Shown here piece after piece: positions 10,069-12,858 of a DNA stretch of 64,000 nucleotides. The position numbers were made by a program, and so were the translations under genes. The stretch covers positions 3,782,001 through 3,846,000 of the forward strand of contig OU015568.1 of NCBI GenBank assembly GCA_907165135.1. Reading direction: 5' to 3'. The notes below the pieces were generated by a model. The model was given only the letters and a program-made list of their open reading frames with translations, had not been told where the DNA came from and did no database searches. Numbering within the stretch: the stretch's first letter is position 1; each line of letters begins with the position of its first letter. The stretch comes from Oikopleura dioica (taxonomy: Eukaryota > Animalia > Chordata).

Positions 10069-11562
10069 TCAAATCTCAGCACAGCATCGTTTTGGAATAG
10101 AAATAGGAACCTTGATTCGCTCGATTTTCCCGGAGATTTTCTCGATCGACCTAAAATTCGATTAAAAGGATGAAAGCTTGCTTCGTGACTTACAGCTCAT
10201 ATTCCCGCGTTTTGAATCCTTTTGGGCTGCAGCTGATCATTTGATTCGCCGGTTTTGAGAGTTTTGCTTTGCAGCACTCGAAGTTAAACGTATCCTTCTG
10301 TTGCTGACTCGCTGAAAATTTTATAACAATAACAAGAAACCTGATTTTACGCTAACCATTGCTTCGATGTGCGAAATGAAGAGATGATTTCAAAAAACTT
10401 TTTGTGGGGCCGGAAATCGTAAAAAATCTGTAAGTGCAGTTTTCTTCAGCTCGTCGAGACGAGTTGAATGATGGGTCTAACTCCTGGTAACTCTAAGGAT
10501 TTACCGGTTTACCGGCTGGTTACCGGAAAATACGTTGTCACCCGCCGTTTTTGTTCTACAAGTGGTAAACAGATGATCGACCCAGGAAATTGTTCCTTAT
10601 AGTCAGATCTCCTCTAGGCTCAAAGATGAGGCTCGTATCAATACTCTGAAGAGAGTTATCAGTAAAAACAGTAAATTTTACGTACATTTTGTTGTTGCTG
10701 CACGTTCCTGATTTTCAGTCCCATTTCTGCCAAAAATAGTATTTTACTGATAACTCTCTTCAGAGTATTGATACGAGCCTCATCTTTGAGCCTAGAGGAG
10801 ATCTGACTATAAGGAACAATTTCCTGGGTCGATCATCTGTTTACCACTTGTAGAACAAAAACGGCGGGTGACAACGTATTTTCCGGTAACCAGCCGGTAA
10901 ACCGGTAAATCCTTAGAGTTACCAGGAGTTAGACCCATCATTCAACTCGTCTCGACGAGCTGAAGAAAACTGCACTTACAGATTTTTTACGATTTCTGGC
11001 CCCACAAAAAGTTTTTTGAAATCATCAAGAGGACCGAAAGACAAGGCATTTGAATTCTCGCAGACGCCCAAGGAAATTGATCGAACTGTACTGTCGCAAA
11101 TATGAGAAACAGTTTCGTGATCAAAGTGGTTGATTGATGGAGGGATGCAACTGGCAACTTCGATATGTCGATGGCCATGAAAATTGACGAAATTGGTGTG
11201 GCAATGGAAACAGCTTGGTTTTCCCCGACCACAAATCTTCAAATTATCATTTTATTGGCGAATTAAAGTCAAAAGTTCTACCTTTTCGGTCAAAATGTGT
11301 TTTGTCATCGGATGTCCACATATCATATCACTAACGACGTTTTCCATTTCATGTCTGATCTTGTTCAAGTAACAGACATCTTCGTCCTGAGGATTCCAGG
11401 GACGAAAAGCCCTTCCTCTCCTTCGGAGGCCCATCTGAAAACTCATCGTTGGTCGATCCGCAGGTACTGAGTCTATTAGCGACTTTGACACCATCATACC
11501 GAGCTCAAAACTTGTTTTCCTGCTCCAACCATGGAGACGAAGAGAGGGAAGAGAGAAATCAT
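10069..11562 (-). CDS. Secreted Cys-rich furin-processed protein, copy B; interrupted by a foldback element in exon 2 and carrying a 1-nt frameshift in the signal region
   Basis: Four exons collinear with copy C: RRRGR^AF site, CYLNKIRHEM..ICG..ICGRGKPSC..GVCE..FECCKAKLSKPANQMISC..IPKRCCAEI*. Removing 10383-11026 plus one TSD copy restores a frame of the same length as copy C. Confidence 0.75.
10383..11026. mobile_element. Foldback/MITE element, 644 bp, ~285 bp near-perfect TIRs, 4-bp TSD AAGA; superfamily unassigned
   Basis: 10383-10667 is the reverse complement of 10742-11026 (one mismatch seen); AAGA at 10379-10382 and 11027-11030. Confidence 0.92.
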
Positions 11563-12019
11563 TGCTGATCTTTCGTAGTTTTTGAACGAAGCTTCTGAGT
11601 AAACCTTCGCCGAAAAATTCTTTATTATACTACTGTTAAAACTAGCGCCATCTTCAATAAAAAATCAATCATGTTCGAAGAATCGAAATAGTCTTGACGT
11701 ATTTTTTGTCTGGGTGCCAGTCAGGCTCTGTTAGCGCAGCGCTTGTTTGATACGTAGCATACATGTATTTATTGCTCAGATTATCCAGACACGTACGGTA
11801 TGCCACGCGTCATAAGATACTGAAGTATATAACATTTCGAGTCTTTATTTCGAGTTTGATAATTAATAAGAAGAACAGAGCAAATGTGAATTTTTGTCAA
11901 GAACATTTGACCTAGAATGGCTTGTTTTAAATGCTCGCGTCAGTATCAAAACAGGAGAGACAGTCAAATTCATGATAAAAAAAATACCTAAGAATCTAAT
12001 GAAGATATTTTGTTGGAAA

Positions 12020-12858
12020 CTAGATGTCAGCGCAGCATCGTTTTGGCATCGCAACAGGAAAACGGATCGTAGTTAGTGCACCAGATGGTTTTTGAATCCA
12101 ACTAAAGTCGAGTTATCAATTGCATGTCAGTGATGAGAGGACTTACAGGCTATATTCTCGAGAATTGTATGCTCTTGGGATACAGTCGATCATCTGATTT
12201 TCCGGGTCGGAGAGTTTCGCTTTGCAGCACTCGTAATTCATCATCATTTTTTCTGCTTGGTTTCCTATAAATTTCGAAATGAAAAAACAAAATGTTGATA
12301 GCAAACTTACTGTTGTTACTGTAGGCAAAAAGGATATTGGCGCATGTTCGTCCCGAAGACAACTCGCAAACACCAAACGACGTTGACGAGACGTAACAGA
12401 TGTGAGACTTAGTGGCATGGTCGTAGTGAGAGATGACTGGAGCAATGCAGTTGGCGGCTTCAATAGCGGGGCCGTCGATTTTGATGTTTTTTGAGTTGCA
12501 TTCGAAGCATTCTTTTTGACCTCGTCCGCAAACCTTAATAAAGCGTTAGAAATCTTAAGGGATCCGATGAAAATCTTACATTATCGACTAGGTATCGTCG
12601 TGTCAAATCGTTCCCGCAGATGAAATCATCGACGACAGTGTCCATATCATGCTTGATTTTGTTCAAGTAGCAAAGTTGATCAGTATCTTGTCGAGAAAAA
12701 GCCCTTCCTCGCCTCTTGAGCCCCATTTGAAAGCTCATCGGGGGTCGATCATTCGGGACAGATGCCATGAGCGACTTCGAGATCATCAGACCCAACTGGA
12801 TGTCATCTTTACGTGATCCGGAAACAACGAGAAAGAGACATGAGAAGTAAGAAATCAT
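12020..12858 (-). CDS. Secreted Cys-rich furin-processed protein, copy C (intact); cystine-knot-like candidate ligand
   Basis: Signal MISYFSCLFLVVSG, KRRGR^AF, four exons with GT-AG introns, ends YECCKAKLSDPENQMIDC..IRFPVAMPKRCCADI* (TAG 12022-12020). Confidence 0.8.

Follow-up and report, generated by a model that had tools for sequence, protein, structure and literature searches.

A tandem gene pair of Oikopleura dioica encoding putative convertase-processed secreted proteins with a predicted cystine-knot growth-factor fold

Introduction

The closest described counterparts of the gene pair considered here are the cystine-knot growth factors. Ligands of the TGF-beta/GDNF type have a signal peptide, a pro-segment of 200 to 300 residues with a LAP domain, an RxxR site, and a C-terminal mature domain that ends a few residues past its last cysteine; this domain contains seven to nine cysteines, the ring motifs CxGxC and CxC, approximately 31 residues from ring Cys III to Cys IV, and an unpaired cysteine beside the fourth knot cysteine for an interchain bond. 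PDGF/VEGF-type ligands carry a C-x-G-C-C signature and a short loop from knot Cys III to Cys IV, and PDGF-A and PDGF-B have a short N-terminal pro-peptide at a furin-type site. The Norrin, CTCK, DAN, and glycoprotein hormone families, which display CxGxC and CxC, are small and secreted, and we know of no furin-cleaved pro-segment among them. Oikopleura dioica serves as a model of extreme gene loss and rapid evolution among chordates; in this species, many of the classical signaling ligands are either missing or unrecognizable. Here, we characterize a tandem gene pair (positions 10069 to 12858) in a window of O. dioica DNA, the window being the whole 64,000-nt stretch analyzed (C1:3782001-3846000), which lies in the pseudo-autosomal region of the OKI2018_I69 assembly (64.28 Mb, 19 contigs). 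An initial annotation had proposed that the pair encodes two furin-cleaved ligands belonging to a very divergent TGF-beta-like or other cystine-knot family.

Our analysis points, with a probability of roughly 0.6, to a secreted, convertase-processed cystine-knot family acting as an extracellular ligand or hormone, in which copy 2 of the pair is a working gene and copy 1 is in decay. The family resembles TGF-beta/GDNF ligands in the order of its parts (signal peptide, pro-segment, RxxR, and a mature domain ending a few residues past the last Cys), in its predicted fold, and in the helices that precede its final long hairpin. It differs from them in its pro-segment of only 38 aa, which has no LAP domain, in its 14 cysteines, in a C-x5/6-C segment with one Gly in place of CxGxC, in an adjacent CC in place of CxC, in the approximately 90 residues that separate ring Cys III from Cys IV, and in having no unpaired Cys beside the fourth knot Cys. 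A short pro-peptide at a furin-type site and the predicted fold are shared with PDGF/VEGF ligands, but the C-x-G-C-C signature is absent, and a long, helical loop separates knot Cys III from Cys IV. The family is also small and probably secreted, like the Norrin, CTCK, DAN, and glycoprotein hormone proteins, but CxGxC and CxC are absent.

Organization of the gene pair

The two paralogues lie in tandem on the minus strand and share an identical four-exon plan with introns of 43 to 46 nt; exon 3 (118 nt) and exon 4 (82 nt) have the same lengths in both. The limits originally given for the pair are exact, position 10069 being the first base of the copy 1 stop codon and position 12858 the copy 2 ATG. 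The parts are as follows.

12858-12020, minus strand: copy 2 (g9492), whole gene, intact, 233 aa.
12580..12858, minus strand: copy 2 exon 1, with the ATG, the signal peptide, the pro-segment, and the mature start with Cys 63 and Cys 81 (P0002 residues 1-93).
12311..12533, minus strand: copy 2 exon 2, ending in phase 1, with the CGRG..C ring candidate and its invariant Gly, seven Cys, and most of the helical insert.
12147..12264, minus strand: copy 2 exon 3, with aa 180-181 (the CC pair) and Cys 195, where the C-terminal hairpin begins.
12020..12101, minus strand: copy 2 exon 4, with the second hairpin strand, the terminal CC (aa 229-230), and a TAG stop.
11494..11562, minus strand: copy 1 signal-like open reading frame (ORF), with an ATG and 22 aa followed by a stop, -1 out of frame relative to the rest of exon 1.
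11282..11497, minus strand: copy 1 exon 1, in-frame part, with the pro-segment containing MSFQMGLRRRGR and the mature start.
11027..11236, minus strand: copy 1 exon 2 upstream of the transposon, with Phe at the ninth conserved Cys.
10383..11026, no strand assigned: foldback transposon in copy 1 exon 2, with 285-nt arms, a 74-nt loop, and a TCTT duplication.
10357..10382, minus strand: copy 1 exon 2 downstream of the transposon, starting with the second TCTT.
10194..10311, minus strand: copy 1 exon 3, 118 nt.
10069..10150, minus strand: copy 1 exon 4, 82 nt, with the terminal CC and a TGA stop.

The exon model of copy 2, in which exon 2 is flanked on either side by a 46-nt GT..AG intron, agrees letter for letter with a public unnamed protein, CAG5080164.1 (P0002; g9492). 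This protein was recovered by the exon 2 profile search described below and served as the full-length query; searches with our own DNA used single exons. It comprises a signal peptide (aa 1 to 15), a 38-aa pro-segment (aa 16 to 53) that closes with RRGR, and a 180-aa remainder containing 14 cysteines (residues 63, 81, 95, 102, 105, 122, 139, 149, 157, 180, 181, 195, 229, and 230). The motifs listed in the initial annotation are present in both copies (MSFQMGL(K/R)RRGR followed by AF, CYLNKI, ICG, CGRG..C, CCKAKLS.P.NQMI.C, and PKRCC near the end), and its count of 13 or 14 mature cysteines is correct, copy 2 having 14 and copy 1 having 13. The sequence likewise predicts what the initial annotation described, a pre-pro-protein destined for secretion whose very short pro-segment terminates in an RxxR convertase motif.

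A constrained, lineage-restricted family

The family profile matches exactly four loci in the genome, namely, the two window copies, C4:5653870-5654580 (L002), and C5:2456805-2457572 (L004), the last of which is annotated as chr2.g4530 (P0017). L002 (C4:5652692-5655916) is an intact paralogue on contig 4. Its protein was returned by no search of public collections, and the locus may be unannotated.

An exhaustive hidden Markov model (HMM) search with the exon 2 profile against 1.84 billion representative proteins yielded seven true relatives, all unnamed and larvacean-like, consisting of annotated O. dioica proteins and contigs from read archives or TARA-type marine metagenomes. Three further matches to this profile were repetitive Cys-rich proteins and were taken as spurious, and word searches with exon 1, P0002, and the family profile found nothing outside the family members. 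The contigs of the relatives have the same tiny introns, and one of them, L006, resembles a transcript, its 232-aa ORF being uninterrupted. The sequences fall into three clades: A (the window genes, L002, and L005), B (L004, L011, and L006), and C (L007 to L010). Across the relatives found, none of the 14 Cys columns is lost, and the Gly of the C-x5/6-C segment and the terminal CC are likewise retained. Ratios of nonsynonymous to synonymous substitution rates (dN/dS) were 0.19 between copy 2 and its orthologue L005 (80% identical) and 0.12 between L004 and L011; the genes of the family are therefore constrained, and their resemblance is not due to chance. These genes are real, conserved, and lineage restricted, and they are publicly annotated without a name; the four-member family appears to be restricted to appendicularians. 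Literature on Oikopleura combined with cystine knot, TGF-beta, or PDGF/VEGFR contained nothing that we could find on the family.

One of the TARA contigs shows an additional feature. In L009, an open frame at positions 92 to 238 contains a motif like that of thrombospondin type-1 repeats (W-S-x-W ... C-S-x-S-C-G) and continues in frame into the clade C family gene. This frame could be an exon of an adjoining gene or part of a fused architecture.

Predicted fold

Two targets that are 27% identical to each other were modeled with AlphaFold2: P0002, from a 23-row alignment (A7), and the mature domain of L006, from alignment A8. The resulting models 1 and 2 have predicted local distance difference test scores (pLDDT) of 72 and 70 and predicted template modeling scores (pTM) of 0.60 and 0.54, respectively. 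In both, the N-terminal half consists of the first Cys, a strand, two helices, the ring segment, and a small hairpin, and the C-terminal half consists of a helical insert followed by a long, confident hairpin (P0002 residues 194 to 210 and 216 to 232). The parts modeled with high confidence (pLDDT 80 to 94) are exactly the strands that align to the fold matches.

Foldseek searches of the PDB with both models placed only TGF-beta-family chains (GDF5, BMP-2/6/7, activin, AMH, and myostatin) or VEGF/PDGF chains in the top ~50 (E 0.013 to 0.2; probability up to 0.99). In a second search, independent of Foldseek, against 48,161 PDB representatives, the top 12 matches of model 1 (Z 4.8 to 4.0) and the top 33 of model 2 (Z 6.0 to 3.3) were all chains of the cystine-knot growth-factor fold; the alignments covered 65 to 91 residues of targets that were 87 to 129 long, and unrelated chains appeared from Z 3.2. 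The 33 chains include the PDGF-A precursor, VEGF-A, PDGF-B, alpha2/beta5, GDF15, Norrin, GDNF, artemin, sclerostin, VWF CTCK, gremlin, TGF-beta2, noggin, AMH, FSH, IL-17, PTTH, and NGF. The cystine-knot-type fold suggested in the initial annotation is thus what the models predict, with two beta fingers anchored at the first and last cysteines; the AlphaFold2 and Foldseek check on both returned only cystine-knot growth factors.

The same searches do not single out one subfamily. The best Z of model 2 (6.0) was obtained with the PDGF-A precursor (3mjk), VEGF-A, and PDGF-B, TGF-beta/GDNF chains (GDF15, BMP-6, myostatin, GDNF, and artemin) reached 4.2 to 5.6, and Norrin and Caenorhabditis elegans alpha2/beta5 reached 4.8 to 5.3 and 4.8 to 5.8, respectively, with sclerostin, gremlin, and VWF CTCK among the other matches. 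Since the Z gaps between cystine-knot subfamilies are below 1, the TGF-beta/GDNF, PDGF/VEGF, and Norrin/DAN types are tied, and glycoprotein hormone chains likewise match the TGF-beta chains in score. A neurophysin-like arrangement (a peptide with a 14-Cys carrier) was also considered and rejected; its size and Cys spacing differ, and no neurophysin occurs among the fold matches.

Cysteines of the putative knot

The structural alignments to every family start 0 to 5 residues before the first mature Cys and end 0 to 3 residues after the terminal CC. In the numbering of PDGF, VEGF, and BMP, we take Cys63 to be knot Cys I and Cys229 to be knot Cys V. Cys195, at the base of the C-terminal hairpin, precedes Cys229 by 33 residues, the usual spacing between knot cysteines IV and V. 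From the alignment end points and this spacing, the knot in the models would be formed by a Cys63-Cys195 pair passing through a ring of Cys95/102 and Cys229/230. Such a ring, in which Cys95-x6-Cys102 (with x5 in clades B and C) is joined to the adjacent Cys229-Cys230, would comprise 9 to 10 residues and would be threadable; a ring from Cys102-x2-Cys105 was rejected as too small to thread. Four additional disulfides, within the insert and near it, would account for the remaining eight cysteines.

This assignment alters two details of the initial annotation. The likeness of CCKAKLS to the TGF-beta motif CCxPxKLSP is probably coincidental, because the internal CC (residues 180 and 181) lies in a helix in both models, 14 residues before the hairpin-base Cys, and that next Cys, C195, at the base of the last hairpin, occupies the position of the fourth knot cysteine. 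With Cys195 as the fourth knot Cys, the insertion, which had been put at approximately 50 aa, is therefore nearer to 60 to 90 aa.

Reliability of the predicted fold

Several observations weigh against the reading that we favor. The models derive from a shallow alignment (23 rows, with approximately eight independent sequences), three of the five model 2 runs reached a pLDDT of only 44 to 46, leaving two good runs, and the central insert is poorly modeled in both models, with pLDDT below 50 across much of its length. Every Z score is below 8, a range flagged by the search tool as common for chance arrangements. The family has no sequence-level link to any cystine-knot family, the clade C relative L009 has no basic cleavage motif, and we know of no precedent for an adjacent CC supplying both ring cysteines.

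Some of these points, namely, the Z scores of at most 6, the shallow alignment, the insert, and the failed runs, together with a poor ESM Atlas model of the same protein (pLDDT 0.43, with no usable neighbor), would be expected if the cystine-knot likeness were a modeling artifact and the family were a lineage-specific disulfide-rich secreted protein of another fold. We consider this quite unlikely, as the models of two distantly similar sequences converge on the same architecture, one small fold class takes 12 of 12 and 33 of 33 top places among 48,161 chains, and the aligned strands are the best-modeled parts. Chance is hard to reconcile with such a concentration of a single small class at the top of the rankings for two predicted structures. 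The cystine-knot reading is therefore supported at the fold level, by models of moderate confidence.

Sequence comparisons and alternative assignments

Pfam searches with single exons and with full-length P0002, P0005, P0008, and P0011 produced no match above threshold, the noise below it comprising Defensin_3 (E 0.017), Ribosomal_L30, and Ogg-HhH. PF00019 (TGF_beta) had no match at E<=10 on P0002, P0005, or single exons, and PF00341 (PDGF) had none at E<=10 on family proteins. A PF00019 scan of the genome detected three or four canonical TGF-beta loci, with CCVP..L.PL and C-x-C ends, and none of the four family loci; PF00341, PF03045, and PF00007 scans of the genome did not match the family loci either. 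A PDB sequence search with P0002 and a profile search with the family profile found nothing relevant, and hhalign gave a probability of 0.3% between the family profile and the C-terminal halves of the genome's own TGF-beta proteins. The initial annotation was right to leave the family unassigned, all of these sequence-level tests being negative.

The possibility that the family is an extremely derived true TGF-beta/GDNF member, descended from a canonical ligand or from a small TGF-beta-like gene and signaling through TGF-beta- or RET-type receptors, draws on its layout (a pro-segment, RxxR, and a mature domain reaching to within 3 to 4 residues of the C terminus), on helices between ring Cys III and Cys IV at the position of the TGF-beta/GDNF "heel," and on the TGF-beta chains at the top of both Foldseek lists. 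A small TGF-beta-like locus (L015) is also present in the genome. We nevertheless consider this descent rather doubtful: PF00019 is unmatched at E<=10 on the protein and on the loci, the hhalign probability is that given above, CxGxC, CxC, a CC with an interchain Cys, and a LAP-type prodomain are all absent, and PDGF/VEGF chains score equally well or higher in model 2. An assignment of the gene pair to the TGF-beta family, the more specific option of the initial annotation, is thus not supported, as other cystine-knot chains fit as well.

L015 itself (C4:3848300-3848900, minus strand) is a small TGF-beta-like segment in a single exon; it has C-G-G-I-C and C-S-C but only one Cys where ligands have CC, and its PF00019 score, 20.9 bits, is below the cut-off. 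Whereas this locus (C4:3848538) keeps C-G-G-x-C, C-S-C, and a weak PF00019 match, the family has 14 Cys and the insert, and comparison of the family profile with L015 revealed no profile similarity.

A derived PDGF/VEGF-type ligand, perhaps replacing a canonical PDGF/VEGF gene not found by a six-frame scan, would accord with the short pro-peptide ending in a furin-type site, with the PDGF-A precursor, VEGF-A, and PDGF-B as the top three matches of model 2 (86 to 87 residues, 17 to 18% identity), and with the lack of an above-threshold PF00341 match in the genome. This origin seems very unlikely, however, in that PF00341 does not match the family, the PDGF signature and the short loop between Cys III and Cys IV are absent, and the lead in Z over other cystine-knot families amounts to a tie. 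The scans yielded two further observations: the best PF00341 score anywhere in the six frames of the genome was 21 bits, and the DAN and Cys_knot (CTCK-type) matches (PF03045 and PF00007), which fall on other loci than those of the family, lie inside giant frames of 5529 and 4257 aa (C2:12010964 and C4:7157339).

Pro-segment and proposed maturation

The RxxR motif before the first Cys is RRGR in clade A, RTSR, RSAR, or RKPR in clade B, and RSRR in one clade C sequence, and proprotein-convertase P domains are present in the genome. We propose that a signal peptide directs the pre-pro-protein into the secretory pathway and that a furin-type proprotein convertase would cut after RxxR (RRGR, residue 53 in copy 2). 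Cleavage would release the conserved 38-aa pro-peptide and a 180-aa domain whose 14 cysteines could form seven disulfides. This mature domain is predicted to adopt the cystine-knot growth-factor fold, in which the first mature Cys would be followed by a strand, the ring segment C-x5/6-C with its invariant Gly, a helical insert of approximately 60 to 90 aa holding the extra cysteines, and a long C-terminal beta-hairpin from Cys 195 to the adjacent CC that stands in place of the usual C-x-C. Its most likely role would be that of an extracellular signaling ligand or hormone acting on a surface receptor, with copy 2 as the working gene.

Proteins with the cystine-knot fold can also be other than ligands, and the family might encode an antagonist or binding protein (DAN-, noggin-, or sclerostin-like) or a structural or dimerizing module of the matrix or house. 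Sclerostin, gremlin, NBL1, noggin, and VWF CTCK are among the tied fold matches, and larvaceans secrete many lineage-specific Cys-rich house proteins. A non-ligand role nevertheless appears unlikely to us; a small protein with a conserved pro-segment is more in keeping with a pro-hormone or growth factor, and, to our knowledge, antagonists and CTCK modules do not occur as small furin-cleaved pro-proteins.

Within the processed ligand or hormone that we favor, the pro-segment (aa 16 to 53; 12700-12813, minus strand) has no Pfam match, and at 38 aa it does not correspond to a LAP-type prodomain (PF00688). It is 79% and 71% identical among the three clade A paralogues, compared with approximately 50% for the mature part, a degree of conservation above that of the mature domain that is unusual for a mere pro-peptide. 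Because it is conserved above the growth-factor domain, the pro-peptide might itself be bioactive as a second product, or it might act as a miniature latency or folding element.

Lesions and a foldback transposon in copy 1

Copy 1 has three lesions: a frameshifted signal peptide, a replacement of the ninth conserved Cys by Phe, and a 644-bp foldback element in exon 2. Signal peptides had been proposed for both copies; this holds for copy 2, but the signal-like ORF of copy 1 is out of frame with the rest of its gene. The notion of a pair of ligands likewise stands for copy 2, which is intact, but is doubtful for copy 1, and because of this damage the pair is better described as one intact gene and one doubtful gene.

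The frameshift, near 11505-11515, is a one-base deletion relative to copy 2, L002, and L005 in an A/T-run context. As the assembly is Nanopore based (PMC8008620), it could be a real lesion or a sequencing error. The other exons of copy 1 are still open and of the right lengths, so the lesions look recent, or else the frameshift is such an error; copy 1 has probably been damaged recently and is decaying.

The foldback (10383-11026) has 285-nt arms that are 100% complementary, a 74-nt loop, and a 4-bp TCTT target duplication, and it is one member of a mobile family, of which the genome contains at least 40 full-length copies at 88 to 94% identity. Its arms carry GTAAGT (donor GT at 10979) and TTACAG (acceptor AG ending at 10428), and, to judge from the sequence, splicing at these sites would retain 96 nt and preserve the reading frame. 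In the public model of copy 1 (g9491; P0004, 136 aa), by contrast, translation begins at an internal Met, no signal peptide is encoded, and the foldback is skipped by means of a donor further upstream in exon 2. Copy 1 thus offers a dated example of a foldback transposon that was inserted in a coding exon and brought usable splice sites with it.

Implications for signaling in Oikopleura

A more specific proposal, which we put forward only tentatively, is that these genes represent a new appendicularian-specific family of cystine-knot ligands. Its members would have a noncanonical ring of 9 to 10 residues closed by CC and a disulfide-stapled helical module at the position of the TGF-beta receptor-binding heel, their pro-peptide would be a bioactive or latency product, and they might serve as orphan ligands for a receptor whose canonical ligand has been lost in Oikopleura. 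A noncanonical knot of this kind would widen the known range of cystine-knot ring geometries. As the public annotation gives these proteins no names, annotation at the fold level is already useful. In a chordate with so reduced a set of recognizable ligands, a conserved, lineage-restricted, putatively convertase-processed cystine-knot family is a concrete candidate for replacement or novel signaling.

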